A model generated the notes under the pieces. It was not told where the DNA came from. It saw only the letters and a program-made list of their open reading frames with translations, and did not search any database. From positions 62,001 through 126,000 of the IMG/VR virus record IMGVR_UViG_3300032236_001613: a DNA stretch of 64,000 nt. The stretch is one strand, 5' to 3'. Position 1 is the first letter of the stretch. Every line of letters begins with the position of its first letter. The translations under genes and the position numbers were made by a program. Below, in pieces: positions 20,948 through 63,763 of the stretch.

Positions 20948-20949
20948 TA

Positions 20950-27081: not shown

Positions 27082-27160
27082 ATGTTCCTCTTAAGTAAAA
27101 TAATATACGTATTTAATATTTGTCTAATATCTAAATTATAATTTTGATATAAATAATTGT

Positions 27161-33056: not shown

Positions 33057-36000
33057 ATGGCTGTACTTAGCTTTCCAAAAACAAGAACCGACGGTAGTCC
33101 TTTACAAATTGGTGATCAATATACTGGAGGTAATGGCGTATTATATACCTACGATGGCGTTAAATGGATTGGCCACTCTCCTGCAGTAAATCCCGGCGCT
33201 AACTCGATCGCTAACAACAGCTTTGTTGTACAGGTCGACACTAGCGGAAACCTTGTTATTCCTAATAGCGCAACTATTGTTTATGAAAGCGGAGTTCCTG
33301 TTACTAGTAATGTATTAGTTAACAATTCGTTTACAGTATTTTTAAGTTCTACAGGCACTTTATCATTTATTAATACCAGTGGGCATGTTATCGATTCTCT
33401 TATTACTAATGCTGGTGCAAGTCAAAATGATCTCGAAATATCAGCTGACAATAATATAATACTTGCAACAAATGTTGCAACTACACTTTCAAATTTTTGG
33501 ACATTTTCAACTACTGGCTCATTAACATTCCCAAATAATACAGTACAAAATACTGCGTGGACAGGAACTATGGCGTGGACCCAGGTAACTGGCAATCCAC
33601 CGTTAGGTTATACTGGTAGTATTGGCTACATCGGTCCTCTTGGCTATGTCGGTAGCCAAGGAGATATCGGGTACACTGGTTCAACAGGATATAGCGGATT
33701 CGACGGATACACAGGTAGCCAAGGAGACATTGGGTATACTGGTAGTGCTAGTGATGTAATTGGTTACACAGGCAGCTATGGAGACTTGGGTTATACAGGT
33801 AGTAAAGGTGCTGGATATACTGGTAGTGCTGGTAATGATGCTGTTGGATATTCAGGTAGTATTGGTTATACAGGCAGTTCAGGTATCGGATATGCCGGCA
33901 GTAATGGTGCTAATGGATATGTCGGCAGTATTGGATACATTGGATCATTTGGTTATACTGGAAGTATCGGATACACTGGTTCAATTGGCTATAATGGAAG
34001 TATTGGCTATACTGGAAGTATAGGATATACAGGTTCGGTTGGATATACTGGAAGTATTGGTTATACTGGAAGTATTGGATACACCGGTTCAATTGGCTAT
34101 AGTGGCAGTATCGGATACACTGGATCATTTGGATATAGTGGCAGTATTGGGTACAACGGTTCAATCGGTTATGTAGGTAGTGCAGGTTCATCAGGAGTGT
34201 TAAACCTCAGTGCCGGAACAGGAATAACCGGAAGCATTAATACCGCTACACAAACATTAAACATAAGTGCTACTGGTGTACAAACAATAAATGGAACAAA
34301 TAACCAAATTACAGTTACTCCAGGTGTTGGGGGTGCTGTTACATTAAGTACTCCTCAGAATTTAAATACTACTGCATCTGTTACGTTCCAAAATCTTACA
34401 GTTAATAATCTAACTGTAAACTCCACCCTTACTGTTGCAACTAACGCTAGTGTTGCAAATAAAGTTATTAATCTTGCTTATAGTGCTACAAACGTAACGC
34501 AGATCGACGGCGGCGGAATTGTTCTAGGTACTGGAACATTCCAACAGAGCATTTTATACAGTCAAGCAAATAGCTACTGGAATTTCCAAGGTGCTGGAAT
34601 TAACGTAAATCAGATCTCAGCTTCAACTGCTACTATTGTTGGTCAATTAGGTGTTAGTGGAAATGTTAACCTAAATACACAATACCGAACTATCAACTAT
34701 CCTAATGCTGCTTTACAAATAGATAGTAGTGCTAATACTTCTACACAACTTATTGCACAGAATCATTTTACTGGAACTCAAGCATCAAACGATATTGTAA
34801 TCGTAAACGATAAAGGAAACAACAGTCAAAACTATATTGATATAGGAATCAACAGTAGTGTCTATGCCGATCCTAACTGGACTTCAAATGGACCGAATGA
34901 TGGTTACTTATTCGTCGATGGTGGTAATCTTACTATTGGTACAGATACCCCAGGAACTTGGGTAAGATTCTTTACCGAAGGCACATTAGCAAATAACATT
35001 GCTGTAGATATTTCAACTACAAACATTACATTATATAATAGTGTTGGCATTGTATTTCCAGATTTAACTAGACAAACATCAGCATGGAATACTTCAACTT
35101 CTGTAAAATGGACTCAAATTACAGGTGCTCCTAATGTTACAGGATATACTGGATCATTAGGCTATACAGGTAGTAAAGGTTATACTGGTAGTATTGGCTA
35201 TTATGGATCGATTGGTTACACTGGTAGCATTGGTTATATTGGTAGTATTGGTTATACTGGTAGTATTGGCTATTATGGATCAATTGGTTACACTGGTAGT
35301 ATCGGTTACACCGGTAGTATTGGCTATTATGGATCAATTGGTTACACTGGTAGTATCGGTTACACCGGTAGTATTGGCTATTATGGATCGATTGGTTACA
35401 CTGGTAGTATCGGTTACACCGGTAGCATTGGCTATGTAGGTAGCTCAGGCATCGGCTATTATGGATCAATCGGTTACGTGGGTAGCTCAGGTGGTGGTTA
35501 TACTGGTAGTATCGGTTATGTAGGTAGTTCTGGAATCGGTTACTATGGATCCATTGGTTACGTAGGTAGCTCAGGTGGTGGTTATACTGGTAGTATTGGT
35601 TATGTAGGTAGCTCAGGTGGTGGTTATACTGGTAGTATCGGTTATGTAGGTAGTTCTGGAATCGGTTACTATGGATCCATTGGTTACGTAGGTAGCTCAG
35701 GTGGTGGTTATACTGGTAGTATCGGTTACGTAGGTAGCTCAGGCGGCGGTTATACTGGTAGTATTGGGTACTATGGATCGATTGGTTATACTGGATCTGC
35801 AAGCACTGCTGCTGGTTATTCAGGAAGCATCGGCTATGTAGGTAGTTCCGGAATTGGTTACTATGGATCAATTGGCTACGTAGGTAGCTCAGGGGTTAGC
35901 TACACTGGATCAATTGGCTACGTAGGTAGCTCAGGGGTTAGCTACACTGGATCAATTGGTTATACCGGATCTGCAAGTACTGTTGCTGGCTATTCAGGAA

Positions 36001-36236
36001 GCATCGGCTACGTAGGAAGCATAGGCGGAGGCTACACCGGTTCAATTGGCTATGTTGGATCATTTGGTTACTATGGATCGATCGGCTACGTAGGTAGCAC
36101 AGGTAGCGGATACACTGGTTCAAACGGCTATGTTGGATCGCAAGGTATTACCGGACCTATCGGATATGTAGGTAGTATCGGGCAGGCGCCTATAGGATTA
36201 ATATTAGCAACTGTAATGGGATATAATTTATTATAA
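33057..36236 (+). CDS. Collagen-like tail fibre protein
   Basis: Two long (G-X-Y)n GYTGSI tracts flanking a beta-rich module. Confidence 0.85.
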   Translation: MAVLSFPKTRTDGSPLQIGDQYTGGNGVLYTYDGVKWIGHSPAVNPGANSIANNSFVVQVDTSGNLVIPNSATIVYESGVPVTSNVLVNNSFTVFLSSTGTLSFINTSGHVIDSLITNAGASQNDLEISADNNIILATNVATTLSNFWTFSTTGSLTFPNNTVQNTAWTGTMAWTQVTGNPPLGYTGSIGYIGPLGYVGSQGDIGYTGSTGYSGFDGYTGSQGDIGYTGSASDVIGYTGSYGDLGYTGSKGAGYTGSAGNDAVGYSGSIGYTGSSGIGYAGSNGANGYVGSIGYIGSFGYTGSIGYTGSIGYNGSIGYTGSIGYTGSVGYTGSIGYTGSIGYTGSIGYSGSIGYTGSFGYSGSIGYNGSIGYVGSAGSSGVLNLSAGTGITGSINTATQTLNISATGVQTINGTNNQITVTPGVGGAVTLSTPQNLNTTASVTFQNLTVNNLTVNSTLTVATNASVANKVINLAYSATNVTQIDGGGIVLGTGTFQQSILYSQANSYWNFQGAGINVNQISASTATIVGQLGVSGNVNLNTQYRTINYPNAALQIDSSANTSTQLIAQNHFTGTQASNDIVIVNDKGNNSQNYIDIGINSSVYADPNWTSNGPNDGYLFVDGGNLTIGTDTPGTWVRFFTEGTLANNIAVDISTTNITLYNSVGIVFPDLTRQTSAWNTSTSVKWTQITGAPNVTGYTGSLGYTGSKGYTGSIGYYGSIGYTGSIGYIGSIGYTGSIGYYGSIGYTGSIGYTGSIGYYGSIGYTGSIGYTGSIGYYGSIGYTGSIGYTGSIGYVGSSGIGYYGSIGYVGSSGGGYTGSIGYVGSSGIGYYGSIGYVGSSGGGYTGSIGYVGSSGGGYTGSIGYVGSSGIGYYGSIGYVGSSGGGYTGSIGYVGSSGGGYTGSIGYYGSIGYTGSASTAAGYSGSIGYVGSSGIGYYGSIGYVGSSGVSYTGSIGYVGSSGVSYTGSIGYTGSASTVAGYSGSIGYVGSIGGGYTGSIGYVGSFGYYGSIGYVGSTGSGYTGSNGYVGSQGITGPIGYVGSIGQAPIGLILATVMGYNLL

Positions 36237-36249
36237 CGGAGATTTAAAA

Positions 36250-37011
36250 ATGTCAGGTAATTCAAACCCAATTTATTCGAGGGTAGGTGATATACAAGGA
36301 GCCTATGCATTAATTAATGCGGCTAACGATTATACAGGTACAGGGCCTAATAATATACCTATCTTCACATCAGACTATACTAACGGCGGCTATGTACAGC
36401 GTTTGAGATTCAAAGCTTTAGGCACAAACATAGCTACTGTAGCAAGGATTTTTATCAACGATAATGATTTAGGGGCGCAAGGAGCTCTATATCAAACCTC
36501 ACCATTAACAACTGCTACTAACTTTAGTGCTACTCCTAGCACGACAGGTGGAACATTATATCCTGGAACTTTTTATGGAAAGATACAAGTAGTTGACCAA
36601 TGGGGCGGAGTAACAGCATTTTCTACAGAAACTAGTGCTGTTGTTGCAGGTTCAGGTGCCGGAAGTATTACTTGGAATTGGGGGGCTGTATCTGGTGCTG
36701 CATCGTACAGACTGTACACAGGACCTGTATCAAATTCTGAGGTTGTATTTTTTACAACTACTACCAATGTATATACACAAACAAATGCAGTAGTACCTGG
36801 AGAAATAGCTAGCCCGGCAGATTATCAAATTAACAACTATTTTGTTGGTGAGATTTCTTTACCTGCTACAACAATATCAGCAACTGCTGCAACTCCTGAT
36901 ATTGATTATCCTATGAACTTGGCGTTACCTCCGGGATATAGAATTTTAGTAGGGCTCGGAACAGCAGTAGCTGCTGGGTGGAGTGTAACTGCAATAGGCG
37001 GAAAATACTAA
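36250..37011 (+). CDS. Tail-associated protein with FN3-like segment
   Basis: ITWNWGAVSGAASYRLY; Thr-rich. Confidence 0.7.
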   Translation: MSGNSNPIYSRVGDIQGAYALINAANDYTGTGPNNIPIFTSDYTNGGYVQRLRFKALGTNIATVARIFINDNDLGAQGALYQTSPLTTATNFSATPSTTGGTLYPGTFYGKIQVVDQWGGVTAFSTETSAVVAGSGAGSITWNWGAVSGAASYRLYTGPVSNSEVVFFTTTTNVYTQTNAVVPGEIASPADYQINNYFVGEISLPATTISATAATPDIDYPMNLALPPGYRILVGLGTAVAAGWSVTAIGGKY

Positions 37012-37985
37012 TGTTAGATGTTTTTAATATACCCGGTGCTACTAAATCCGATGTACAGACGTTTACTGCAAACTCAACTGTAGCAGGCGGCAGCTGGTAT
37101 ACATGGCGTAAACCTAGAGGTATTTCTTTCATACATCTCTTCCTTTTAGGAGGCGGTGGTGGCGGAGGAAGTGGATTCATAGGTGCTGCTAGTAATGCTG
37201 CCGGCGGCGGCGGAGGTGGGTCATCCGCTCAAGCTAATATGATATTTCCTGCATGGGCTTTGCCAGATATTCTTTACATTTCCGTAGGAAGTGGAGGAGC
37301 TGGCGGCAATGCTGGTAACGGCGGTAATGGAATAGCCAGTTATGTATCAATTGATCCTAGCATTACCGTAAATAATCTGTTATCTATCGCAAGCGGAGGC
37401 GTAGGTGGTGGTGCTGGTAGTGCAACTACAGCTGGAGCAGTAGGTACCGCAGGTGCTGCATCTGCATCTACCGCAGCATATCTAGCAGGATTAGGATTTT
37501 TCTTTGGCGGAAATACTGCTGCAAACTTTAATCTTATTGGATCAGCTGGAATTATCGGAGCAGCGATCGGCGGTATTGCAGGTGGAAATTTAACGTTACC
37601 CGGAGCTTCAAACACTAACGCAGGATTAATTGTTACAGGTGGGGCGTCTGGAGCTTCTCTAGGTGCCGCTGCAAGCACAGGATTTGCTGGTGGTAATATC
37701 ACAGGTGCTGGGATTTTTCCAACAAGTAGCGGTGGAGCTGCAGGCGGAACAACAACAGCTCCGGGCGGGAATGGAGCTGGCGGGTTTTCACCTATTAAAG
37801 GATTACTTTACTTTTATGGCGGCACTGGAGGGGCTAGTGGTGGCGGTGCTGGAGGCAACGGCGGAGTTGGTGGTAATGGAGCGAACGGAGCAGGCGGTGG
37901 CGGTGGCGGTGCTGGATTAACTGGTACGACTGGCGGACAAGGTGGCCGAGGCGGCGATGGGATTGCAATTTTAACTGCTTGGTAA
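37011..37985 (+). CDS. Glycine-rich tail fibre tip-type protein
   Basis: W.KP.G...I....GGGGGGG..GGGGGS; ends GGRGGDG.A..W; start at 37011. Confidence 0.8.
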   Translation: MLDVFNIPGATKSDVQTFTANSTVAGGSWYTWRKPRGISFIHLFLLGGGGGGGSGFIGAASNAAGGGGGGSSAQANMIFPAWALPDILYISVGSGGAGGNAGNGGNGIASYVSIDPSITVNNLLSIASGGVGGGAGSATTAGAVGTAGAASASTAAYLAGLGFFFGGNTAANFNLIGSAGIIGAAIGGIAGGNLTLPGASNTNAGLIVTGGASGASLGAAASTGFAGGNITGAGIFPTSSGGAAGGTTTAPGGNGAGGFSPIKGLLYFYGGTGGASGGGAGGNGGVGGNGANGAGGGGGGAGLTGTTGGQGGRGGDGIAILTAW

Positions 37986-38002
37986 ACATATAGGAACAAA
38001 AG

Positions 38003-40168
38003 ATGTCATTATTATTTCCCACAAGTCCAAACGTAGGTGATACATACCGTGCAGATAACGGTGTAGTTTATACTTGGACTGGTGATCGTTGGAGTGCTGC
38101 ACAAACAGTACAAAATCTCGGACAAACTATTCCAGTAGCATATGGTGCTCAGATCGTTAACAACGGTTATTCATTAAATGTTGACACAGGTGGAACTGTA
38201 ACTCTTCCAATAAGCACACAATCGGCTATCAAAATAGAAAGCGGCGATATTTCTCTTAGAGCAGGATTTCATACTTGGATCGCTGATTCGGTGCAAGGAG
38301 GAACATATGCTAAAGCAGTTACCTTAGATAGCCAAGGAAACACTATTATTATTGGTGTTGATGATCAAGGCAATCAACCTGGGTACATGATAAAATTAGA
38401 CACCCGTGGGAATGTCATATGGCGTCAAGATATAACAGCTAATGTCGCTACCAGCTCTACTGCATGGTGGGAAGGATATGGGTTATGCGTTGACAATTCT
38501 GACAATATATATTCAACTATTAACTATCAATATGGGACTAACGCAGACAATAGCCCTAATAGAGAAATTGAATTAATAAAATTTGATCCTAATGGAAATA
38601 TTGTGTGGAGTAGTAGTTTTGGATTCTACGGAACAGACTTAGGATTCAGTCTTGCTCACGACGGCAACACAGGCATTGTGTTAGCAGGTCAAACACAGGC
38701 TTTAGATACCAGTACATATGATATATTTGTTGCTAAATTTGATCAATTTTCCGGAACAGCAACATGGCAGACTATTATAGGTAATATAGGCTCCGACGAA
38801 AACGAATACGGCATGGCAGTAAACACTAATACCGGTAAGATATTAGTAGTAGGATCTAGCAATGCTCTTATTAACGGCAATAATAATTCATCTTCTATGA
38901 TTGTTGTAGTACAGCTTGACGGCGTAACAGGAGCAGCAGATTGGCAAAACTCCTATGCCAGTTCATTGACTAATTATAATAGCTATGCTACAGATGCTGC
39001 TGCAGAACCCGGCGGTGGATGGTATGTTTACGGCGTACATAATGTTGCTAATTATAATTCTGCTGTATCAACTGCAAGGTTAGATTCTACAGGTAACATT
39101 ATATGGAGTTACTTATACGACGAAGGATGTTTAAATATCTCTGCTGCGATTGATACAGACGAACAGGGAAATTTATACGTAAACTATTTTACATTTGTAC
39201 CTATTAAAAATCAATACTATTTTGGTATAGGTTTTGGAAAATATACTCCCGATGGAACGTTTATATGGCAACGGTATTTAACTAACACAACAACAGATGT
39301 TCTCACAGTTGGTGATTTATGGTTCAGTGGTCCAGATCCATGGACAGATAGATTAGGTCAAACACTGGCAGTAAGAAACGGGCGTCTTGCAATGACTGGG
39401 GTTACATTCAACGGCTACAGCGAGACTAATCCAAAAACATTTGTACTTAATACCGAGGTTAACGGTGAACTTATTGATACAGGCAATTACAGAACAGTAA
39501 CCAGCAATTTTGTTCCTACTCCTGATACCTATATTGTAACCGCGTCGAATTATACCGTAACAAATATTACCGGCGGTAATGGTCCTTTATTTGCAGCAAG
39601 TGCAGACAATTCGATTGTAACAACCGCAACCACTATTACTTTAAATACCTATACTGATTATACTACATGGAAATTTAAACATACTGGCGGATTAGAGTTC
39701 CCTGATAAAACTGTACAAACTACAGCTTATCCTGGACAGAACCGTGTGTGGAGAAGCCCTAGCCCGAGTGAGTGGAGTATCACTGAGTGGGATTCAGGAG
39801 GAGTATTTAACTATGATGGAACAACTCCTACTATCTGGTTTGATCCTCGCAATTGTCCTGCTACTACAGATACCTATCTATTTCGAGGAGCAATAATTAG
39901 CTATCATGCTTATATCTTAGGCTCCGGTACTTGGATTGGAACCATACATTTAGCTTGCGATTATCCTACAGGAAATTGGTCAGCAACACATGCTGAAAAT
40001 GCCAATATAAATGGTGTTAATGTCAACGAACCTACTTATCAGTTTTGGGTCACAGATGCTAACTATCCTTACGCATTAACATTTGGAAATACAGTTGCTG
40101 CACAAACTGCAACAACATATATACAGTGGACTGCTAAAATGTTCTACGGCAATGACTACAACTATTAA
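38003..40168 (+). CDS. Tail adhesin with beta-propeller-like repeats
   Basis: DSQGN/DNSDN/DEQGN..W repeats; FP..P..GD.Y N-terminus. Confidence 0.75.
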   Translation: MSLLFPTSPNVGDTYRADNGVVYTWTGDRWSAAQTVQNLGQTIPVAYGAQIVNNGYSLNVDTGGTVTLPISTQSAIKIESGDISLRAGFHTWIADSVQGGTYAKAVTLDSQGNTIIIGVDDQGNQPGYMIKLDTRGNVIWRQDITANVATSSTAWWEGYGLCVDNSDNIYSTINYQYGTNADNSPNREIELIKFDPNGNIVWSSSFGFYGTDLGFSLAHDGNTGIVLAGQTQALDTSTYDIFVAKFDQFSGTATWQTIIGNIGSDENEYGMAVNTNTGKILVVGSSNALINGNNNSSSMIVVVQLDGVTGAADWQNSYASSLTNYNSYATDAAAEPGGGWYVYGVHNVANYNSAVSTARLDSTGNIIWSYLYDEGCLNISAAIDTDEQGNLYVNYFTFVPIKNQYYFGIGFGKYTPDGTFIWQRYLTNTTTDVLTVGDLWFSGPDPWTDRLGQTLAVRNGRLAMTGVTFNGYSETNPKTFVLNTEVNGELIDTGNYRTVTSNFVPTPDTYIVTASNYTVTNITGGNGPLFAASADNSIVTTATTITLNTYTDYTTWKFKHTGGLEFPDKTVQTTAYPGQNRVWRSPSPSEWSITEWDSGGVFNYDGTTPTIWFDPRNCPATTDTYLFRGAIISYHAYILGSGTWIGTIHLACDYPTGNWSATHAENANINGVNVNEPTYQFWVTDANYPYALTFGNTVAAQTATTYIQWTAKMFYGNDYNY

Positions 40169-40178
40169 GGATTAACAG

Positions 40179-41159: not shown

Positions 41160-41180
41160 TCAAGGAACCAGGAAAGTAAC

Positions 41181-43307: not shown

Positions 43308-43310
43308 GTT

Positions 43311-44138: not shown

Positions 44139-44141
44139 ATT

Positions 44142-45601: not shown

Positions 45602-45637
45602 TTTTTAAGTATAAATATAGAATAATAAGGAAAAATA

Positions 45638-45874
45638 ATGGCGCTTAACCATATTTCTACAGCAACTTCAAGTACTGCAATAGCTACTAAACTCTATCGC
45701 AGAGACTTAAAGTTGAACTTAGCACAAACTAAGCGTCAGAGCAGTACCGCTACGTGGCATAGAGTATTAAATATAATATCAGGAACGCATGTTGCTTATG
45801 TTAGTACATCAACTGCTACTGTTAGAGGAACCACTAGCCCTACTGTTGGGCATCCGTGGACATTAGGAGTATAA
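45638..45874 (+). CDS. Small late protein
   Basis: TATAAATA at 45610 and AAGGA RBS. Confidence 0.7.
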   Translation: MALNHISTATSSTAIATKLYRRDLKLNLAQTKRQSSTATWHRVLNIISGTHVAYVSTSTATVRGTTSPTVGHPWTLGV

Positions 45875-45877
45875 GGC

Positions 45878-46090: not shown

Positions 46091-46100
46091 GGAGTGATCC

Positions 46101-51524: not shown

Positions 51525-51579
51525 GGTGAGTGCCATTGTTATAGTTAGAAGATATAGGTAATGAGGAGTTAAATACGGC

Positions 51580-54500: not shown

Positions 54501-57500
54501 AGCATTCACTGACGCTAGCGGCAATAATACTATTACAGGAACAGCAATATATGATGTAATAAATGGTCTCATAATTTGGGATATAGCTAGTACCGGTATT
54601 ACGTTCCCTGATCATACAATACAGACTACCGCATGGAATTCCTTAGCTAATGTAGCATGGAGTCAAATAACAGGTGCTCCTGATGTAACCGGATATACTG
54701 GATCAACTGGTGATCAAGGTTATACCGGTAGTATAGGATATACTGGTAGCCGAGGATATACTGGTAGCCGAGGTTATACTGGAAGTATCGGTTATGTAGG
54801 CAGTATTGGATATACTGGAAGTATCGGTTATGTAGGCAGTATTGGATATACTGGAAGTATTGGTTATACTGGAAGTATTGGATATACTGGAAGTATTGGT
54901 TATACTGGAAGTATTGGTTATACTGGATCAGCTAGTACAGCTACAGGATATACCGGTAGTGTTGGTAATACAGGATATACCGGAAGCATTCCAGGATCTT
55001 ATGTCAGTAGTATAACAGCAGGTACAGACACTGTAGTGAATACAACTACCGGAGCTGTTACTATATGGGATAATAGCACTTTGCAAAGTGTGGTTAATCG
55101 AGGATCAAGTGTATCAGGCGTTACTCCAACATTTAATTCAGGTATTAGCGTTCCTGGAACAAGCACATTAGGTGGTGGTATCAATTTAAGTGGGAATCTT
55201 GCAAGCTCACCAATTAATATGAGTGCCTCGTACGGAGGACCATTTATAGCCGCATATGGGACACTTAACGGCTCTGGAAATATTTACTCACTGCAATACC
55301 AACATACTCTTGCACCAACTACGACAACAGTTGCTGCGTATTACGGAAATTTATTCTTACCAACGTTAGGAAATACTACTACCTATACTACCATGTATGG
55401 AACATTTGCTCGAGTTGATATGAATGCAAGTGCTGTGTCAGGATCAGTTAATACATGGTATGGTATGTTTTCTGCAAGTCCAAGTAGAAATGCTGCAGCT
55501 GATGTAAGATTTACCAATCATATAGGATATTATGCACAAGATCCTACCGGTATTACTGCAACTAACGTTTATGGATTTCAATCTGCTATAAATCTTGCTT
55601 CGGGAGTTAACAAGTATAATTTCTATGCTAGCGGAACAGCTCCGAATTATTTTGGAGGAACCAGTACATTTGCTAATTCTGCCTTAGCAACTTCTACCGC
55701 AACCGGCGCATTAGTTGTTACAGGTGGTGTTGGAATTGGTGGTAATATATGGGCAGGTGACTCTTATATAGGTGCCACTAATTCAAACTATTTTCAAATT
55801 ATTGGTGCTGTAAGTGCAAGTGCTACAGGTCCATCGATATTAGCTGCAGGAACAGACACTAGTATTAACCTTACTATCGAATCTAAAGGAAACGGAGTTA
55901 TTAAACTTGGTGCAGTAAATAATAATCCTACTGTACTTACTATAACGCCAACCGCTAGTGGATCAAACTATAACAATCTAAATATCACTAACGGTGTTGC
56001 TGGAGGAGTTAGCGGTCCTACGATCAATGCGTTTGGCAGTATCGATGCTAATATTGATATAAATTTAACACCTAAAGGTCTTGGAAAAATATATATCAAT
56101 GCTACAGCAACTTCTACCTCAACAAATACAGGTGCATTAGTTGTTGCAGGCGGTGTTGGAATTGGTGGCAACTTAAACGTCGGAGGAACAGGAACAATTG
56201 GATCCTCAAACGCAAACTACGTTGCCATTTCAGGTGCTTCAACTACACTCGAGCCAGCAATTGTTGCAACTGGATCTGATGCTAATATTCCGATACTGCT
56301 ACAGACTAAAGGAACTGGCAGCATTGACTTATCGGCAGGAACAGGAGGTTTCAATTTAAGTAATGGTACTTCGGTAACATCGCTAACTCGTAATTCTCCA
56401 GGTACCGGTTATACATCTACTCCTACAATAACAATTTCTGCGCCAACAACTCCAGGTGGTATAACAGCACTTGTTGCACCTATACCTATCGGCATTGTTG
56501 CTACACCGACTGTAGCATCATCAGGTACAGGGTATACTAATGGCGAGGTACTAAGTGTTTTAGGGGGTACATACACAACTAGTGCAACGATCACAGTAAC
56601 TGCAGTAGGTGGCAACGTCACAGGAGTGTCTGCATATACTAGCGGTGCATACTTTAACTATCCAGGTCCAAATCCTGTTGCAACTGTGTCAACACTCACC
56701 GGTAGTAGTGCAACATTTACGTTGGTATTTGGTGTAGGCAACGTCTATACAATCACTCAAGCAGGATCAGGATATGTTGAGCAACCGACCGTTACCGTCA
56801 GTGGCGGCGGTGGCAGTGGCGCTTCATTTTATGCAACTGTTAGCTCTCCAATAATTATTAAGAGCATCGGTGCATCTGCTGCTACTGCTATTGACTTTCA
56901 AGGACCCTATAATGGTCCAGCTAATATTTCACTTTTAAGACTTCGAGATATTGCTAACGCTGATTCATATATTCAAATACAAAACGGCTCTAGTAATAGT
57001 GGATTCCCGTTAATTGCTGCACAAGGTAATGCTAATTCAAATTTATCTTTATTTGCAAACGGTACAGGTATTGTTACTATCGGTTCAGGCGGAACTAGTC
57101 AAACCGGCCAGTTGAGAATTACAAACACTACAGGAGCGGTTAATCAATTATATATCACTGGGGCAACGACAGGTAATGGTCCGATTATTTCTGCTGGCGG
57201 AACAGATGCAAATATTGGTCTCAACATTGTTACAAAAGGCACTGGTGCTATTTCATTAAGGACAGGGGTAACTTCGACAACGCAGTTGCAAGTGATAGAC
57301 AACGTCGGTTCAGTTAACTACGTTACCGTCAAGGGTTCTCCAAGTGGAGCAGGGCCAACTATTAGCGTAGGTGGATCCGATACAACTGCACCGATTAGTC
57401 TTGCTCCTAAAGGCGATGGTGTTGTTTATATAGGCGGATCTAGCAGCAGTGTTACTAATACTGTGCGTATTGTTCCAAGCGGTGTAGATGCTTTGCGTAT

Positions 57501-58917
57501 AAGCGCAAATAATTCTGCAGTAAACTATTTGCAAGTCAATGCGGCTACTACCAGTTTTAGCCCAGCTTTTATTGCACGTGGCTCGGATGCTAATATCGGA
57601 ATTAATTTTGGTGCGCTTAATGCAGGTAATTTAAACTTTTATTCATCAGGCGATCCAAATGCCGGGACGGGAAAACTACAATTCCAAGTAACACCTACTG
57701 CAACTGCGACTAATTACATGGCAGTCACGGGAGCAATTGCAGGAAATGGTCCGACGATATCTGCTCAAGGATCCGATACAATAATTAATCTTAATGTAAC
57801 TCCTAAAGGAAACGGATCTGTTGTTATACCAAGTACTTCTGCAACAATTAATACTACTACAGGAGCATTAGTTATTACAGGCGGGGTTGGCATAGGACAG
57901 AATCTTAATGTCGGCGGATTAACTAATATCAGCTATACCGGTAGCGCAGATAGCAGTTTACAAATTACTGGTTACAATTCTAAGGGCGGCACAGGTTATC
58001 ACGATTTCTTAAGAGTAACAAACGGTTACACTAGTGCTACTAACATTAACAAATACTTCCGCTTAAACAGCACCGGTAGTTTAGAAATACTGCGTAGCGA
58101 TTATGGCGCTATAATATTATCATTAACTGATACCGGAGGACTTACATTTGGTACAGCTACGGTTTCTAACAATGATGCTACAAATAACTATTTAATATTT
58201 AACGGCACCGCGGCTAATACCGGCAGCGGACTTATGTTATACGACGACGGCAATTCGCATATACACGCTAGAGGTAACGGCGGATCGCTGTGGCTTAATG
58301 CTAATAATGGTGCTATCATCTTAGGTAATCAAGCACCGGTAAATGGTGGGTCGCCTGCCTCAGCTATCCTGATGGGAAACTCAACTACTATACGAGCCTA
58401 TGCTAACATCAACGGTAATAAGTCATATGCTATAAGTGGGTATGGTTATTTGTCAACCGGTGGCGCCGGAACTGTCCCTGGTGGTTCTGGAACCGTTCCG
58501 TACAGTCTGTATTGTTCTGATCGTATACAAGCAGCCGAAGTTGACGCTACATCCGACGAACGTGCTAAGGATATACAAGGAACTATTCCTTTAGAAAAGG
58601 CTTTGCTGTTTATTCAAGAAGTAGACGGTATCCTATATACTTGGAATCCAGATGCTGTGGAGCATGATGATCGTGGATTAAAAGCAGGGTTTGGGGCACA
58701 ATCTGTACACAAAGCAGGCTTCGAACACATGCTAGGTATTATTCCCAACGAGAAGATGAAAGAACAAGTGGACGAGGACGGATGGGTGCATCCCGAAGGT
58801 TACCAGTTAACTATGGGGTACAATCAAGCCATTCCGTATCATCATACTGTTATTAAACATCTGTTAGATCGTATTGAGAAATTAGAACAATTGGTAGAAA
58901 AACTACAGGGCAATTGA
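51580..58917 (+). CDS. Long tail fibre (2445 aa) with LamG-like domain and C-terminal intramolecular chaperone (peptidase S74)
   Basis: FTMEVWF..HHIA.VR (ConA/LamG); TSDERAKD..W..GF.AQ..coiled coil; TGALVV.GGVGIG x6. Confidence 0.88.
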   Translation: MSLNFPPGATTGTTYNGYTYDGTKWVSTSTIPTNQSLYTTDVVTFAGINATGDIIPAADNTYNLGSPANKWKHVFVTSGSIYLGDVKLSTQNGQLVIQNVSYTYNTVTNIINTETVINTYAAPTIVPFFTVTNAFVAGNIITTSTDASTTTVTANALYVAGGVGIGKSLYVTGPAIFKNDVVFGGSTNYVYSTNTVYTDNILELHAPPGGVNGQWTFNDGKDIGLRFHYYSNTDTNAALVLAQDSGNLEWYSSGAEGSSTFVGVTYGNIKAGGIILVNSTASVNTQTGALVVAGGVGVGGDINIGGSIYINGSAVGYGYTGSLGYVGSIGYAGSQGITGYTGSTGYTGSIGYVGSIGYTGSTGYTGSIGYIGSIGYTGSFGYVGSAGLIANPYSGILTITNTTNSIGATTGALVITGGLGVGKDVNIGGNLNVNAITATNLTLKNNRIVLGNGTPVNTTVSNAIMIGNGAGSGITSGDPNLIVIGYGAYQIGSGSTAISNNIAIGTAALQGGNLAGSAGANIAIGYNAFSFGPTGDYNIALGTNVGANMTQATYLVAVGFNAAYGLSAKSTTATSVGNIAIGYKALYASAFQADGIVAIGPNAGYNSAQGNFSIVIGNSATSVANSIVLNASGTKAVRGTVSGFYVNPVRADSSTSATTWAVFYNPATYELTTASTFVGYYGSIGYNGSIGYVGSAGTNGYNGSIGYTGSIGYIGSLGYTGSRGYTGSIGYTGSAGAASTVPGPKGDIGYTGSVATPYQLVNSDYTLQLSNAGDVTINNTGINGSGLYFDGTTNLLISPGIQFGTSAFTMEVWFQIDPGYTDQYALIGPPSSNVGSLGARGDENGAGITYDAGNGSTQFVYAQGAITTGVPHHIAFVRDSSNNCQVFLDGVACTTGVQTIPDDLTSNVTDTHEIGGWNDGTYGQYYLHGFITGVKIVVGNNLYNPNASNITVPSLPFTNSTGTQLLINPTDSVSAFTDASGNNTITGTAIYDVINGLIIWDIASTGITFPDHTIQTTAWNSLANVAWSQITGAPDVTGYTGSTGDQGYTGSIGYTGSRGYTGSRGYTGSIGYVGSIGYTGSIGYVGSIGYTGSIGYTGSIGYTGSIGYTGSIGYTGSASTATGYTGSVGNTGYTGSIPGSYVSSITAGTDTVVNTTTGAVTIWDNSTLQSVVNRGSSVSGVTPTFNSGISVPGTSTLGGGINLSGNLASSPINMSASYGGPFIAAYGTLNGSGNIYSLQYQHTLAPTTTTVAAYYGNLFLPTLGNTTTYTTMYGTFARVDMNASAVSGSVNTWYGMFSASPSRNAAADVRFTNHIGYYAQDPTGITATNVYGFQSAINLASGVNKYNFYASGTAPNYFGGTSTFANSALATSTATGALVVTGGVGIGGNIWAGDSYIGATNSNYFQIIGAVSASATGPSILAAGTDTSINLTIESKGNGVIKLGAVNNNPTVLTITPTASGSNYNNLNITNGVAGGVSGPTINAFGSIDANIDINLTPKGLGKIYINATATSTSTNTGALVVAGGVGIGGNLNVGGTGTIGSSNANYVAISGASTTLEPAIVATGSDANIPILLQTKGTGSIDLSAGTGGFNLSNGTSVTSLTRNSPGTGYTSTPTITISAPTTPGGITALVAPIPIGIVATPTVASSGTGYTNGEVLSVLGGTYTTSATITVTAVGGNVTGVSAYTSGAYFNYPGPNPVATVSTLTGSSATFTLVFGVGNVYTITQAGSGYVEQPTVTVSGGGGSGASFYATVSSPIIIKSIGASAATAIDFQGPYNGPANISLLRLRDIANADSYIQIQNGSSNSGFPLIAAQGNANSNLSLFANGTGIVTIGSGGTSQTGQLRITNTTGAVNQLYITGATTGNGPIISAGGTDANIGLNIVTKGTGAISLRTGVTSTTQLQVIDNVGSVNYVTVKGSPSGAGPTISVGGSDTTAPISLAPKGDGVVYIGGSSSSVTNTVRIVPSGVDALRISANNSAVNYLQVNAATTSFSPAFIARGSDANIGINFGALNAGNLNFYSSGDPNAGTGKLQFQVTPTATATNYMAVTGAIAGNGPTISAQGSDTIINLNVTPKGNGSVVIPSTSATINTTTGALVITGGVGIGQNLNVGGLTNISYTGSADSSLQITGYNSKGGTGYHDFLRVTNGYTSATNINKYFRLNSTGSLEILRSDYGAIILSLTDTGGLTFGTATVSNNDATNNYLIFNGTAANTGSGLMLYDDGNSHIHARGNGGSLWLNANNGAIILGNQAPVNGGSPASAILMGNSTTIRAYANINGNKSYAISGYGYLSTGGAGTVPGGSGTVPYSLYCSDRIQAAEVDATSDERAKDIQGTIPLEKALLFIQEVDGILYTWNPDAVEHDDRGLKAGFGAQSVHKAGFEHMLGIIPNEKMKEQVDEDGWVHPEGYQLTMGYNQAIPYHHTVIKHLLDRIEKLEQLVEKLQGN

Positions 58918-58964
58918 TTTCTAAATTCCTTTCTGCTATTATATGCGTATATTAAATACGGCAT

Positions 58965-61900
58965 ATGAAAAAGATCAAAATAGCGATTATAGACTGCGTA
59001 GGTCTTAACTACGATGGAACAACTTTACAGAAAAAAGGCATCGGCGGCTCAGAAAGTTCAATCATTTCTGTAGCAAAAGAACTAGTTGCACTAGACTTTG
59101 AAGTCTCAATTTTTAATGATTGTAACAGCCCAGATACTAAGCCCGGTATTTACGATGGTGTTAACTACTATCCTATTAGAACACTAGGTCAACGTGAGTT
59201 TGGCTTTGATATTGTTATCAGTCAAAGAACAGTAATACCATTTACTCCGCTTGAACTTTATGATCAAGTACGTCAGCCACCTCCTAGAGATTTTGATCCA
59301 AATATTTTCCGTCAAGTACAACGAACCGAACAGTTAAAGATCTTATGGCAGCAGGATACGTTTATTTGGGGTGATGCCTTACTTGAACAGTTATGTGTTA
59401 AAGGCTACATTGATGAGATTTTTAATCTCAGCGATTGGCACATTAGTTACACTACACATTCTAGTCACGGACCACGACGTAACTTTGAAGTATTAAAACG
59501 TTATATCTATCATACACGCAATGCTATTAATCGTTGGATAGATTGGGTTGATATTAAAAAGAAAGATCCTAACCTATTTGTCTATAATGCTTCGATTACT
59601 AAAGGTATGGTGCCTTTAGTACAAAAGATCTGGCCTAGACTTAAACAACATTTACCTAATGCTAAACTAAAAATTATCGGCGGTTATTATCGTTTCAATA
59701 ACGAACCAGTAAACGAGGCACAACAGAATTGGATTAACTTACAGAATTCTGTAGCACATGATAAGTCTGTCGAGTTTACAGGAATTATTCCGCAACCTAA
59801 GATTGCGGAAATTATGGCCGAAGCCAGTTACAATCTCTATCCCGGTGCATTTCCTGAAACATCAGGTATCAGCATTATCGAAAGTATCAACTATAATACA
59901 CCTATAATCGGTACACGCTTCGGTGCCATGGAAGAATCTGCAGCCGAAACAGCAGGTTACTATATCGATTTTCCAGTAGAGCCTAACGGACTATTTCCTA
60001 ATATTAACACCGACGATCAGGTTAATCGCTATGTTGATTTAGCATTGCGTGTTATAAGAGATCCTTACCTACATCAACAAAAGCAATATGCTTGCAATGC
60101 AGCTAAAGATGTTAGTACTTGGGATACAGTTGCATTACAATGGAAACAGCATTTTTATTATAAATTAGGATTAGAATTATCTGCCGAGGAACAACAGGCA
60201 GTCGATTGGATTAACTATCGTGTGCACAAAGTATTTGGTAAACGATTTGCTAATCCTGAAGAAGTTGTTGTTACCCAAAAACCCGAAAAGGTAACTGCAT
60301 TACCCGGACCACGTCCTAAGATTGCATTCGTTGATATTGTTGGCATGGCATACGATGGCGACACTCTTAATCGCAAGGGCATGGGCGGTAGCGAAAGTGC
60401 GGTTATTCTTAACAGTCGAGAACTAGCTAAAATTGGGCTTGATGTTACTGTGTTTAACGCTTGTAACGAAGATGGTAGTAGTCCTGGTATGTATGATGGG
60501 GTCACTTATCGACCTCTTGCAGATTTACAATCAACTACTGATGTTTTTGATGTAGTTATAAGCAGTCGTGTAGTTACACCTTTTATTACAGAACCATGGT
60601 ATAATTATCCCCAAACAACAAATAGAAAAATTGATTATCGTTGTTTTGAAAATATGCGTCGTAACGCAAAACTAAAAGTGTTTTGGATGCACGATACATT
60701 CTGTTGGGGCGATGACATTCTAGAAGATCTTGTTTGGACAGGTGCTATTGACGAAGTATGGACACTAAGTGACTTCCATGCATTCTATGTAATGAATGCT
60801 GCACATCCGCGCATGCGCATGATGGAAGTTATGCGTAGTCGCACATGGACTACTAGAAACGGATTAGTAAAATACTTTACTGAAGTAGACATTGCTGCCA
60901 AAGACCCTAACTTGTTTATATTCAACGCTAATATGAGCAAGGGCCTCGATCCTTTATTAAATCTTGTTTGGCCTCGAGTTGTAAAACAAATACCTAAAGC
61001 ACGTTTAACCGTAATTGGCGGCCATTATAAACTAGGTGCAGCATTTGCGCATAATGATGAAGAATCTGAGTTTATGAAGTTAGCTGGGCCGCACATGAAC
61101 AACCCTTCTATTACGTTTACAGGAATCATTAGTCAAAGAGAAGTTGCTGAAATTTCTGCAAAGGCTAGTTACTTCCTGTATCCAACTGCATTTCCTGAAA
61201 CTTACAGCATTAGCACACTAGAATCTCTGTACGCTAATACTCCTATGATCAGCTGTAGATTCGGTGCATTAGAAGAAACTGCTAGCCCCGAAGGCTACTT
61301 GATTGACTATTCCACAACACCGAATAGTTTATTTCCAAACGTTAATCCAGAAGAGCAAGCAGACCGTCTAGTTGAATTAGTTGTTAATGCATACAATAAT
61401 CCTAAAGAACACCAACGCAGAATGAAGGCATTAGATGTTATTAAAGATTTAGCCGGGTGGGATGTTGTTGCATTAGAATGGAAACAGCATATTTACAATA
61501 AGTTAGGCTTGTACTTAAGCCGTAGCGAAAGTCAGCAAGCTACTTACACTAAAAGCAAATATAGAAAAATCTTTAACCGTCGTATGACTACTGCTGAAGA
61601 ATGGCTCGTTCCTCCACAGGAATTATCCGATCAACAGAAGATGGTTATTATTAGTCCTTTTTACAATGCTGAACCTTACATCGAACGTTGTATTGCTAGC
61701 GTAGCAGCACAAGACTACGATCGTTACGAGCATTGGTTAATTGACGATGCTAGTACCGATAACGGATTTAAAGTTGCAGAAGATTATATCAATCAGCTAC
61801 CTGAAGAAATACAAAGTAAATTTAGACTAATCCGTAATGATGAAAACCAAGGTGCAGTCTATAATCATATGAGTGTTATTAGAGATTTAGATCCTAATGA

Positions 61901-63050
61901 TGTTATTATGATGTTAGACGGCGACGACAGTTTAATTAATCGTCCTGATGTATTAAGATACTTTAATGCTGTTCATTGGCATCACGATTTTACTTATGGG
62001 TCATGCTGGAGTATGGTTGATCAAATTCCATTAATCAGTCAGCCTTATCCTCCAGAAGTTATTGAATCTAGAGATTATAAAAACTATCATTTTAATTGGA
62101 AGATTCCGTATACTCATTTGAGAACAATGAAAGCCAAACTATTGTTAGAAGTTCCTAACGAGGCTTTCCAAGATAATCAAGGCAATTGGTTTAAAGCCGG
62201 CGGAGATAACTCTACGTTCTATAACGCATTGTATAATTGTGATCCTGATCGGATTTATGTGGTTCCTGATATTGTTTATAACTACAACGATGCAAGTCCT
62301 ATTAACGATTATAAGGTTAATAGAGAAGAGCAAGATCGAGCTATTTCGGTTATTTTTGGAAATAATGATCCTATTGATCGTGCACCAAAAAAACCCGAAA
62401 CAGTTAGCCAACCAATTGCATTATCAGCTCCTGCTGTAAATATCGGCCCGGCTAAACGTATTTTAATAGCTATTCCAACTAACAGAAATATTGAAGCTCA
62501 GACTTTTAAAAGTATATACGATTTAATTATACCCGACGGATACGTTGCTGAGTTTCAGTATTTCTGGGGATATCAAGTAGATCAAGTACGTAATCTAATT
62601 GCACACTGGACGATACACAATGGATACGATTACTTGTTTGCTGTTGATAGCGATATTTCGTTTGCACCAGACACATTAGTAAAACTATTATCGCATAATC
62701 GAGATATTGTTTCAGGTATATATATTCAACGCATTCCAGGAACACATATTATTGAAATTATGCGTAAAAATCCGCATGGTGGTGTTAGCCATGTTGATTG
62801 GAATACTATTAAAGGGCAAGGCTTAGTACCAATTGACGGATGTGGATTTGGTTGCGTACTAGTTAAATCTGAAGTGTTTAAAGCTATACCATATCCTCAC
62901 TTCCTATATCATAGTGCAATTGATCATAAAAATACTTTAAGTGAAGATGTTCATTTCTGTAATCAAGCTAGAGATAGAGGATTTACACTTTGGGCAGATA
63001 CTAGTGTAATTTGCGATCACACTGGATCTTGGACATTTAAGGTAAACTAA
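58965..63050 (+). CDS. Four-domain glycosyltransferase (GT4-like x2, GT2, GT-A)
   Basis: Duplicated KIA..D..G..YDG..L..KG.GGSES; P.YNAE.YI..C..S..DDASTD..LDGDD; VDSD..GFGC.L..EDVHFC. Confidence 0.9.
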   Translation: MKKIKIAIIDCVGLNYDGTTLQKKGIGGSESSIISVAKELVALDFEVSIFNDCNSPDTKPGIYDGVNYYPIRTLGQREFGFDIVISQRTVIPFTPLELYDQVRQPPPRDFDPNIFRQVQRTEQLKILWQQDTFIWGDALLEQLCVKGYIDEIFNLSDWHISYTTHSSHGPRRNFEVLKRYIYHTRNAINRWIDWVDIKKKDPNLFVYNASITKGMVPLVQKIWPRLKQHLPNAKLKIIGGYYRFNNEPVNEAQQNWINLQNSVAHDKSVEFTGIIPQPKIAEIMAEASYNLYPGAFPETSGISIIESINYNTPIIGTRFGAMEESAAETAGYYIDFPVEPNGLFPNINTDDQVNRYVDLALRVIRDPYLHQQKQYACNAAKDVSTWDTVALQWKQHFYYKLGLELSAEEQQAVDWINYRVHKVFGKRFANPEEVVVTQKPEKVTALPGPRPKIAFVDIVGMAYDGDTLNRKGMGGSESAVILNSRELAKIGLDVTVFNACNEDGSSPGMYDGVTYRPLADLQSTTDVFDVVISSRVVTPFITEPWYNYPQTTNRKIDYRCFENMRRNAKLKVFWMHDTFCWGDDILEDLVWTGAIDEVWTLSDFHAFYVMNAAHPRMRMMEVMRSRTWTTRNGLVKYFTEVDIAAKDPNLFIFNANMSKGLDPLLNLVWPRVVKQIPKARLTVIGGHYKLGAAFAHNDEESEFMKLAGPHMNNPSITFTGIISQREVAEISAKASYFLYPTAFPETYSISTLESLYANTPMISCRFGALEETASPEGYLIDYSTTPNSLFPNVNPEEQADRLVELVVNAYNNPKEHQRRMKALDVIKDLAGWDVVALEWKQHIYNKLGLYLSRSESQQATYTKSKYRKIFNRRMTTAEEWLVPPQELSDQQKMVIISPFYNAEPYIERCIASVAAQDYDRYEHWLIDDASTDNGFKVAEDYINQLPEEIQSKFRLIRNDENQGAVYNHMSVIRDLDPNDVIMMLDGDDSLINRPDVLRYFNAVHWHHDFTYGSCWSMVDQIPLISQPYPPEVIESRDYKNYHFNWKIPYTHLRTMKAKLLLEVPNEAFQDNQGNWFKAGGDNSTFYNALYNCDPDRIYVVPDIVYNYNDASPINDYKVNREEQDRAISVIFGNNDPIDRAPKKPETVSQPIALSAPAVNIGPAKRILIAIPTNRNIEAQTFKSIYDLIIPDGYVAEFQYFWGYQVDQVRNLIAHWTIHNGYDYLFAVDSDISFAPDTLVKLLSHNRDIVSGIYIQRIPGTHIIEIMRKNPHGGVSHVDWNTIKGQGLVPIDGCGFGCVLVKSEVFKAIPYPHFLYHSAIDHKNTLSEDVHFCNQARDRGFTLWADTSVICDHTGSWTFKVN

Positions 63051-63052
63051 TA

Positions 63053-63763
63053 ATGAAAATAGCTATTTTGGTTAGTGGTCAGCCAAGATTCCACAAAATG
63101 TCTTTCTACGATCACCTTACAAAGTTTAAAGGCTATAGTCAAGTTGATTGGTTTTTTTACATTTGGAAAAATAACGAAAACATCAAAAACATTCCGCCTG
63201 AATGGATCAATATTTCCGATGTTAATTGGGCTGTTGAAAAAATTAAAAAAAATCTACCTGTTAGCCATATACTTTCACGTTTTCATTTAGGAATGTATAA
63301 TATTCACGAATATCATACGTTGCCGTCAATTGGCTCAATAAATGCTATTAATTTACAATTTTATAGTTTAAAACAAGCCGATTTACTCCGTCAAGAAACA
63401 GAACAAACGTGGGGAAATTACGATTTAGTTGTTAGAACTAGGCTAGACAGAGAAATTACAAAAGAGATTAATCTAATAGAATTAAAAAACAAATTAGATT
63501 ATAACCCAAATCTCGTTTTCACACCAAATAATTACAAACATTATTATAATGAATATGGTATGTGTGACGCTTTTGCTATAACTTCTTCTAAAAATATGTC
63601 AATCTATAGTGATTTAATTAATTTTATTCCATCTTACTATCAGCAAGGGCTATATCCTCATCCTGAATCTTTGTTAAATTATCATTTAATAAAAAACTCT
63701 TTAGAATTAGACGAAACTTTGGAAATTAACCAATCATATAGCTACGAGTATGTAGACTGGTAA
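63053..63763 (+). CDS. Putative glycosyltransferase-related protein
   Basis: MKIAILVSGQPR..YDLVVRTRLD..D.FA..PE.LL. Confidence 0.6.
   Translation: MKIAILVSGQPRFHKMSFYDHLTKFKGYSQVDWFFYIWKNNENIKNIPPEWINISDVNWAVEKIKKNLPVSHILSRFHLGMYNIHEYHTLPSIGSINAINLQFYSLKQADLLRQETEQTWGNYDLVVRTRLDREITKEINLIELKNKLDYNPNLVFTPNNYKHYYNEYGMCDAFAITSSKNMSIYSDLINFIPSYYQQGLYPHPESLLNYHLIKNSLELDETLEINQSYSYEYVDW

Follow-up and report, generated by a model that had tools for sequence, protein, structure and literature searches.

Virus-encoded glycosylation of virion proteins and the glycosylated collagens of prokaryotic type are the described systems to which the module considered here comes closest. This module, a multidomain glycosyltransferase (GT) of 1361 amino acids (aa) encoded beside collagen-like fibre proteins that contain almost no Pro, lies in a stretch of 64,000 nucleotides (the window), bases 62001-126000 of one 328,068-bp contig (IMG/VR virus record IMGVR_UViG_3300032236_001613; 37% GC). 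No description of such a module was found in the searchable literature, and a literature search on the GYTGS repeat of the fibres returned nothing relevant.

The PBCV-1 enzymes A064R (two GT domains and a methyltransferase) and A111/114R (three GT domains) perform cytoplasmic glycosylation of the capsid protein (PMC7826918). Like the window GT, they are virus encoded, soluble, and multidomain, with each PBCV-1 domain adding one sugar or methyl cap, and relatives of the window GT with a terminal FkbM methyltransferase parallel the methyltransferase of A064R. In contrast to PBCV-1, the predicted window system has a bacterial host, four to five modules instead of three, and a putative collagen acceptor rather than the major capsid protein (MCP); no detectable sequence relationship was seen between the two. 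Virion O-glycosylation has also been reported in mycobacteriophages, in which phage GTs encoded near structural genes decorate virion proteins (Freeman et al. 2023, cited in PMC12619734). There, C-terminal extensions on the capsid and tail-tube proteins of siphoviruses of Actinobacteria serve as acceptors, the GTs have a single domain, and, unlike in the window, collagen repeats are not involved.

Among glycosylated collagens, the exosporium filament protein BclA of Bacillus anthracis/cereus and Clostridioides difficile is O-glycosylated and rich in Thr at the Y position of its G-X-Y triplets, and a contribution to hydration and stability has been proposed for its glycan (PMC8968730). BclA is a spore-surface protein with Pro-rich GPT repeats and, unlike the three window fibres (F1, F2, and F3), has neither Tyr/Ser alternation nor a fused multi-GT enzyme. 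Mimivirus encodes collagen-like proteins and the hydroxylase/glucosyltransferase L230 that glycosylates them (Luther et al. 2011, cited in PMC8968730), and the fibrils of Megavirinae are glycosylated with virus-made sugars (PMC10117803). The Mimivirus system involves hydroxylysine-linked glucose, collagen of the Pro/Lys type, and a eukaryotic host, whereas the window system has no hydroxylase and almost no Pro or Lys. The cuticle collagen of the vent worm Riftia is poor in Pro and hydroxyproline, and galactosylated Thr at Y raises the stability of its helix; it was the model behind the original prediction, made from the window sequence, that the GT builds an oligosaccharide on the fibre repeats. 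Compared with Riftia collagen, a product of the animal secretory pathway, the window fibres carry Thr only at every second Y position, where it is partly replaced by Val or Ile.

Closer in virus type is the “host recognition cluster” of pelagimyophages and cyanomyophages, in which GT genes of aquatic T4-like phages are interleaved with tail-fibre and collagen-repeat genes; these GTs are mainly GT8 and are read as host O-chain modifiers, and no specific GT-collagen pairing was reported (PMC7029224). By its capsid protein, one of the two lineages bearing the module described here is a relative of Pelagibacter phage Mosig, Melnitz, and DLP6. Prophages also have tail fibres of collagen-like type (streptococcal HylP and E. 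coli O157), which are trimeric, with G-X-Y tracts between trimerizing domains (PMC3368898). In these fibres the tracts are short and include Pro as well as charged residues, and no GT is dedicated to them. Finally, “hairy” jumbo phages of the Rak2/GAP32-like group (CBB, Atu_ph07, and phAPEC6) bear fibres resembling whiskers or hairs along their tails (PMC5259590, PMC6102473, PMC7247149).

Judged from its genes, the source genome is that of an uncultured freshwater T4-type jumbo phage with a Rak2/GAP32-like capsid. Its MCP, gp23, is of the T4 type and shares 67-71% identity with the MCPs of Rak2/GAP32-like jumbo myoviruses (Vibrio phage 2.275.O, Sinorhizobium phage Phosso, Cronobacter GAP32, Pectobacterium CBB, and Xanthomonas XaC1), and five cultured capsid relatives that were tested contained neither the GYxGS collagen pattern nor a GT homologue. 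The IMG/VR genome is estimated to be 92% complete, and DNA-level comparison revealed no cultured phage close to it. Membership of the moraphages was rejected on the basis of the T4-type, Rak2/GAP32-like capsid, as moraphages are placed near the ERM huge phages. The sequencing runs holding the locus are DNA metagenomes only (one labelled freshwater), with no RNA sequencing run among them.

The fibre and GT genes and the promoter-like boxes before two of them are as follows (window coordinates).

33057..36236, plus strand: F1, a fibre protein of 1059 aa, with G-X-Y tracts at ~33606-34202 and ~35142-36188 and a dominant GYTGSI hexad.
46101..51524, plus strand: F2, a fibre protein of 1807 aa, with collagen tracts at ~46503-47411, ~47619-48461, and ~50718-51098.
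51569..51577, plus strand: TTAAATACG box located 3 nt before the start codon of F3.
51580..58917, plus strand: F3, a fibre protein of 2445 aa, with collagen tracts at ~52531-52746, ~53614-53793, and ~54691-54990.
58952..58960, plus strand: TTAAATACG box (ATTAAATA at -14) before the GT gene, a variant of NATAAATA.
58965..63050, plus strand: the 1361-aa GT, comprising a first GT-B/GT4-like module (58965-60314), a second GT-B/GT4-like module (60315-61634), a GT2 module (~61635-62384), and an Anp1/A197-like GT-A module (~62443-63047).

The original prediction of three fibres with long tracts of strict G-X-Y and almost no Pro was borne out. Counting only runs of at least five strict triplets, F1, F2, and F3 contain 143, 170, and 76 triplets, and their longest runs (35, 73, and 27, respectively) compare with ≤9 in 500 composition-preserving shuffles. 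Pfam Collagen (PF01391) scores are 138, 196, and 82 bits, respectively, against a cut-off of 27.2. The repeat unit is the hexad G-Tyr-Thr-G-Ser-Ile, in which X alternates between Tyr and Ser (36-46% each) and Y between Thr (or Val/Ile) and Ile (or Ala, Gln, or Lys). Pro occupies 0-1.5% of X and Y positions, and charged residues are scarce; the stabilizing imino acids or charge pairs that are usual in, although not strictly defining of, characterized animal and bacterial collagens are not found in F1 to F3. As the DNA copies of the repeats match each other at only 63-95% and Ser is encoded by both AGY (118) and TCN (65) codons, the periodicity is selected on the protein.

F1, F2, and F3 are most likely collagen-like fibres of the virion, predicted to form trimeric triple helices. 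Their identity as fibres is indicated by a C-terminal Peptidase_S74 intramolecular chaperone domain in F3 (PF13884; aa 2325-2383, ~58552-58728; 23.8 bits against a cut-off of 22), which is lacking in F1 and F2, by PHROG matches of the fibre proteins to tail-fibre families, by weak discoidin- and fibrinogen-like matches of neighbouring genes, and by the modular build of F2, in which collagen tracts lie between five copies of a ~120-aa “LWWN..DGNLY..STLGGVKIG” module. The collagen open reading frames (ORFs) of relatives likewise have N termini of tail-fibre type, and Ser plus Thr outside the collagen tracts amounts to 21-23% in all fibre proteins. A left-handed beta-helix (hexapeptide) reading of IGYTGS was rejected as the main model, as Gly occurs strictly at every third residue while the phase of the hexad shifts, the Tyr triplets of F2 being spaced by two, three, or four triplets. 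Searches by tblastn against cultured phages gave no match for F1, probably through low-complexity masking, or for a neighbouring 721-aa protein. Five more collagen-like ORFs lie outside the window (genome 1704-8245, 222835-228129, and 326266-328068), those at the two contig ends being neighbours if the genome is circularly permuted, and the whole genome encodes at least eight proteins with G-X-Y tracts.

The GT4+GT4+GT2+GT-A make-up proposed for the 1361-aa protein was confirmed, with catalytic motifs in all four modules and Pfam matches above the cut-off in all but the last. Two stretches score above the cut-off for the GT4-type families Glycos_transf_1/Glyco_trans_1_4, the N-terminal Glyco_transf_4 match is weak (19.8 bits, below 28.5), and the two GT-B modules are paralogous, aa 2-449 resembling aa 458-905 through internal duplication. 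An EX7E motif can be read in both (“ETSGISIIE” and “ETYSISTLE”). The GT2 module (PF00535, aa 895-1015) reaches 69.1 bits against a cut-off of 23.3 and contains “IDDAS” and “DGDD”, and the C-terminal GT-A module (aa 1207-1253) reaches 27.1 bits for Anp1 (GT62-like), just under the cut-off of 28.8, with a DSD motif, a weak match to STIV A197 (E = 0.002), and a match to phrog_1574, a family without assigned function. Searches of PDB by phmmer gave no match for module 1 and only a marginal MshA-like match for module 2, and a hydropathy scan found no membrane segment. In all likelihood the protein is a soluble enzyme of the cytoplasm whose four catalytic modules comprise two of the retaining GT-B type, a GT2, and a GT-A, and with its EX7E, DXD, and DSD motifs intact it fits its earlier description as a multimodule assembly line. 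The GT family is large (>1000 matches scored), and its best 120 clusters are 51-92% identical to the window GT over the full length and are all metagenomic, unnamed or auto-named. Many relatives are ~1590 aa long and end in an extra FkbM-type methyltransferase, and shorter versions with one GT-B module (870-1150 aa) also exist.

Co-occurrence of GYTGS fibres and multi-GT genes across phages, the check that accompanied the original prediction, far exceeded chance. Scanning IMG/VR with the protein as guide located the GT at 29 loci, and DNA encoding GYxGSxGYxGS was present in all five large GT-bearing contigs, with reversed-pattern controls near zero in four of them. A DNA pattern for GYTGSIGYTGSIGY matched only 57 stretches among 2.9 million viral contigs and was absent from 185,579 prokaryote genomes; a looser DNA pattern, of 3.5 hexads, was uninformative in prokaryote genomes, giving mostly chance matches (high GC) and small real collagen ORFs at 5 of 80 loci. 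Of 53 distinct fragments found by the GYTGSIGYTGSIGY pattern alone, 26 carried a strong GT homologue, compared with ~11 expected by chance from summed CheckV completeness, assuming one randomly placed GT per genome (Poisson-binomial P = 2e-7; 2e-6 with obvious duplicates removed), a comparison in which metagenome fragments are non-independent samples, some of them near-duplicates, and the random-placement null ignores late-gene clustering. The excess was also found among fragments ≤25% complete, where 15 carried the GT versus 4.4 expected.

Linkage extends to gene order. At 13 loci, which include near-duplicates and represent at least 10 distinct fragments, the GT and a giant collagen ORF are immediate divergent neighbours, and the two ORFs lie 0-67 bp apart stop to stop. 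Start codons of the divergent pair are 34-91 bp apart in seven of eight measured pairs, the collagen start of the eighth (L116) not being placeable, and the spacers that were read contain ATAAATA-type boxes, in some cases facing both ways. The paired collagen ORFs are 900-2300 aa long and reach 1611 aa of G-X-Y, 192 GYxGS motifs, and unbroken runs of 179 triplets, and the tightest pairing is with proteins that are almost wholly collagen tract (up to 1611 of 2005 aa). In the DLP6/Melnitz-like lineage, the collagen ORFs (L116, 2-6016, minus strand; L110, 3920-10849, minus strand; and L094, 12782-19000, plus strand) contain 1488-1611 G-X-Y residues in runs of 178-179 triplets. The triple helix rises 0.286 nm per residue, and these collagens, if triple-helical, would measure ~0.4-0.46 micrometres, longer than the virion. 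Other relatives encode fibre paralogues beside the GT that lack collagen tracts and have three triplets, GYTGSQG/GYIGSQG, near the N terminus (L021, 3955-9483; L002, 6150-7691).

Capsid identity to the window phage is 90-94% for four of the module-bearing genomes (G001, G002, G003, and G006), 77% for G007, and 35% for G009, whose capsid is 74% identical to that of Stenotrophomonas phage DLP6 and 64-66% identical to those of Melnitz and Pelagibacter phage Mosig. The GT modules of G009 are nevertheless 51-63% identical to the window GT, and a collagen ORF ≥2073 aa long lies beside its GT; the module is therefore present in two widely separated branches of the T4 superfamily, for which joint transfer of the GT and the collagen is the simplest explanation. 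Taken together with the absence of both from the five cultured relatives, a functional GT-collagen link is well supported.

Two smaller genes had also been predicted to be GT-like, and for both the modelled fold agreed, with no Pfam match.

63053..63763, plus strand: ORF236, 236 aa, GT-A fold nearest GT6.
26305..27081, minus strand: ORF258, 258 aa, GT9-like (heptosyltransferase fold), with the same TTAAATACG box at ~27108-27116 (minus strand).

The AlphaFold2 model of ORF236 (pLDDT 87.7) has top Foldseek matches that are all GT6 (E = 2e-7, TM ~0.5, 13-15% identity). ORF236 is rare (seven homologues) and occupies the slot in which the GTs of relatives carry the fused FkbM methyltransferase; a homologue after the GT was found only in L021. 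The possibility that it is a detached C-terminal domain of the ~1590-aa GTs was rejected, as that extra domain is the methyltransferase. The top Foldseek matches of the AlphaFold2 model of ORF258 are WaaF, WaaC, and the protein heptosyltransferase TibC (E = 2e-5, TMq 0.56), and its atlas neighbours are named GT9; it is ~80 aa shorter than GT9 enzymes and is a core gene of the lineage, with 861 homologues at 60-88% identity. As a Pfam scan gave no match for ORF236 or for ORF258 (PF01075 included), the GT6-like and GT9-like assignments are fold-level leads.

Upstream sequences suggest that the GT is expressed with the fibres. The 8-mer NATAAATA (ATAAATA-type), similar to the T4 late promoter, is enriched >20-fold genome-wide in the 60 nt upstream of predicted starts, usually at -12 to -14. 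This position, seen for example at window 19759, 22454, 27148, and 63767, leaves hardly any room for a leader or Shine-Dalgarno sequence; AAGGAG-type sites are likewise enriched upstream of genes. The late box first assigned to the GT is indeed present at -14, in the form of the ATTAAATA/TTAAATACG variant of NATAAATA and not as the canonical TATAAATA. The genome has five copies of the 9-mer TTAAATACG, of which three lie upstream of F3, the GT, and the GT9-like gene, which have the TTAAATACG(GCAT) box in common, and the 13-nt string TTAAATACGGCAT is identical directly before the start codons of F3 and the GT. No box precedes F1 itself, which seems to be read from that in front of 31644. The GT and the fibres would thus most likely be produced together at a late stage, from promoter boxes of one type.

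Conservation of the repeat across lineages bears on the possible acceptor. The consensus is G-[Y/F]-T-G-S-x with a free sixth position, in which Ser at X is the near-invariant hydroxyl residue and Thr follows the aromatic residue in 47-94% of cases. Exchange of Tyr for Phe makes the Tyr hydroxyl unlikely as an obligatory acceptor, and if the repeats are the target, conservation points to Ser first and then Thr.

The best explanation of these data, to which we assign about an even chance, is that the GT builds an oligosaccharide directly on the fibre polypeptides, giving glycan-coated fibres. F1 to F3 would be trimeric virion fibres built on a virus-specific, Pro-free hexad, G-[Tyr/Phe]-Thr-G-Ser-x, and the late cytoplasmic GT, processive by architecture, would add a short, defined oligosaccharide, one sugar per module, to the fibre chains before or during trimerization. 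The acceptors that we infer would most probably be the conserved Ser/Thr hydroxyls of the hexads, and the chain would be methyl capped by the fused FkbM methyltransferase in relatives, and here the GT6-like ORF236 might extend it. Sugar donors would be supplied by host pools or by the nucleotide-sugar pathway of the phage. The weakest step, and a purely conjectural one, is the effect of the glycan on helix or virion, which might be hydration or stability of the Pro-free helix, shielding against proteases or adsorption, or adhesion.

A glycan/nucleotide-sugar island lies outside the window (genome 172-191 kb and 156-160 kb; loci L102 and L103). It encodes a fusion of HAD and NTP-transferase (nucleotidyltransferase) domains, several 4,6-dehydratase/epimerase/reductase homologues (GDP-mannose-dehydratase-like), a DegT aminotransferase, a TPP-dependent enzyme, a 3-dehydroquinate-synthase-like cyclase, an HpcH aldolase, methyltransferases, two GT17-like proteins, and two GT34-like proteins. 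From this gene content, the phage seems able to make unusual sugars by itself.

Several observations weigh against glycosylation of the fibres by the GT. The phage is uncultured and known from DNA metagenomes, and all evidence is genomic; the best PDB sequence matches of the GT are weak (GalT1 at 3.7e-7, TagF, and A197), and neither GT fold nor family reveals the acceptor. Five of ~11 distinct lineages found via the GT search have no collagen ORF within 10 kb, and some relatives keep the GT beside fibres with only a vestigial GYTGSQG motif. Shared location instead of shared function could explain part of the linkage, because both genes sit in a hypervariable fibre/“host-recognition” region. 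Within the repeats, Thr in the GY-T position reaches only 47-66% in the window, with Val, Ile, or Tyr instead, and Phe replaces Tyr at 6-28% of X positions in some lineages. Replacement of Thr by Val or Ile fits a beta-branched structural preference at Y as well as it fits glycosylation, and Thr at Y is ordinary in prokaryotic collagens (PMC8968730). Overall, the original interpretation is partly supported, and its coupling of GT and collagen is considerably strengthened.

A bolder form of the proposal can be entertained only tentatively. The multimodule GT, with or without methyltransferase, and a Pro-free collagen of up to ~1600 helical residues (roughly 0.45 micrometres if fully triple-helical) might be a mobile two-gene cassette that has spread among unrelated aquatic T4-like phages, in which O-glycosylated Ser/Thr would provide a sugar that replaces hydroxyproline as helix stabilizer and coats a virion “hair”.

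Remodelling of the host surface is the alternative that survives best, although we consider it unlikely. The GT and the sugar island would alter lipopolysaccharide (LPS), capsule, or S-layer glycans of the host during infection, blocking superinfection or the sticking of progeny to debris, and the GT would have come to lie beside the fibres via the fast-evolving host-recognition cluster. GTs in pelagimyophage tail-fibre clusters and in jumbo-phage and cyanophage GT clusters have been read in this way, as modifiers of host O-antigen, LPS, or capsule (PMC7029224, PMC7824862), a reading that also counts against fibre glycosylation. The large nucleotide-sugar/GT island is of the kind used for polysaccharide synthesis, and the JGI auto-name of the homologues is “glycosyltransferase involved in cell wall biosynthesis”. 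However, the GT has no transmembrane or membrane-anchor segment and appears to be late expressed from the same box as F3. Host-surface remodelling also does not predict a tight, orientation-independent pairing with one type of collagen across lineages at 35% MCP identity, and the excess of GT-collagen co-occurrence on short fragments speaks against it.

Glycosylation of the virion by the GT with another role, or elsewhere than on the repeats, is doubtful. The glycan would act as a shield against proteases or adsorption or as an adhesin that binds host glycans, or its sites would lie in non-collagen Ser/Thr/Asn-rich domains or the capsid, with no stabilization of the helix. Mycobacteriophage glycans on capsid and tail-tube C termini act as a shield (cited in PMC12619734), and PBCV-1 glycans decorate the capsid (PMC7826918). 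The Ser/Thr content of the fibres outside the tracts, the relatives in which the GT stands beside fibres with only the three-triplet GYTGSQG motif, and the free exchange at Y among the beta-branched residues Thr, Val, and Ile, in keeping with a structural role of their own, all speak for this reading. The strongest and tightest pairing, in contrast, is with proteins that are almost all collagen.

A linkage without function, in which GT and collagen genes hitch-hike on a cassette prone to recombination while the GT acts on something else, such as small molecules or other proteins, is improbable. Gene order around the GT is highly variable and the module appears horizontally mobile, as hitch-hiking would predict, but the divergent pair recurs in many distinct fragments, its short spacers (34-91 bp) contain promoter-like boxes, and both features are jointly absent from the five cultured relatives. 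DNA hypermodification, which the original prediction had named as an alternative and in which the GT modules would build glycans on hydroxymethylated bases as T4 alpha/beta-glucosyltransferases and further DNA GTs of phages do, is very unlikely: phage GTs are classically DNA modifying and multisugar DNA glycans are known (cited in PMC12619734), but the only thymidylate-synthase-family (PF00303) gene is a canonical ThyA (349 bits, dUMP-type “PFNIAS” Asn motif), a PF00303 family search of the genome found no dCMP hydroxymethylase, and the GT lies in the late fibre operon rather than among replication genes and is paired with a structural gene in other lineages.

Other genes of the fibre operon and its surroundings are listed below.

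31644..33041, plus strand: 465-aa protein, first gene of the fibre operon, with a AATAAATA box at -42.
36250..45601, plus strand: eight co-directional genes in the F1-F2 interval, with adhesin-like or accessory domains, including the next four entries.
36978-37985, plus strand: Gly_rich_2 protein, 335 aa, with GGxGGxG-type tracts; its predicted GTG start overlaps the end of the preceding gene by 34 nt.
43311-44138, plus strand: weak F5/8-type-C (discoidin-like) match.
44142-44969, plus strand: weak fibrinogen-C-like match.
44915-45601, plus strand: pirin/quercetinase-type bicupin (PF02678, 76 bits).
63779-64000, continuing to genome 127059: 426-aa gene after ORF236, homologous to a GH19 chitinase/lysozyme-domain protein (L021, 14796-16262).
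240-314, minus strand: tRNA-Lys(TTT).
19772-22125, plus strand: pair of adjoining ORFs, each of 391 aa, with a 5'-3' deoxyribonucleotidase-like domain in the second.
22131-22208, minus strand: tRNA-Met(CAT).
22468-23130, plus strand: endonuclease VII/HNH-like gene.
29014-30321, plus strand: ATP-dependent DNA ligase, best matches SPO1-like Bacillus phages (31-34% identity).

The N-terminal region of the 465-aa protein recurs at the starts of collagen ORFs in relatives (L017, 3783-6323, 54% over 133 aa; L097, 16856-19000, 45% over 128 aa). The glycine-rich tracts of the 335-aa protein do not resemble collagen of the GYTGS kind. Cross-linking of the Tyr ladder, whether mediated by pirin or through dityrosine, was rejected, as the pirin gene is not kept beside the module in relatives and Phe stands for Tyr in some lineages; a role of the bicupin in oxidative chemistry on Tyr-rich fibres is pure speculation. 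A GH19-related gene follows the GT in many relatives, and the 426-aa protein is possibly a tail-associated or lysis muramidase.

If the GT glycosylates the fibres, phage virion glycosylation, so far shown only in mycobacteriophages, would extend to abundant freshwater T4-like and jumbo phages, and there would be a concrete alternative to the host-surface reading of GTs in phage “host-recognition clusters”. The fibres would also represent a new collagen chemistry (Pro-free, with an aromatic/Ser ladder, and possibly sugar-stabilized) that can be produced in the bacterial cytoplasm and is of interest for recombinant collagen materials. If sugar does replace hydroxyproline in the collagen of such a cassette, it would be a virus-specific way to make very long collagen in the cytoplasm of bacteria.

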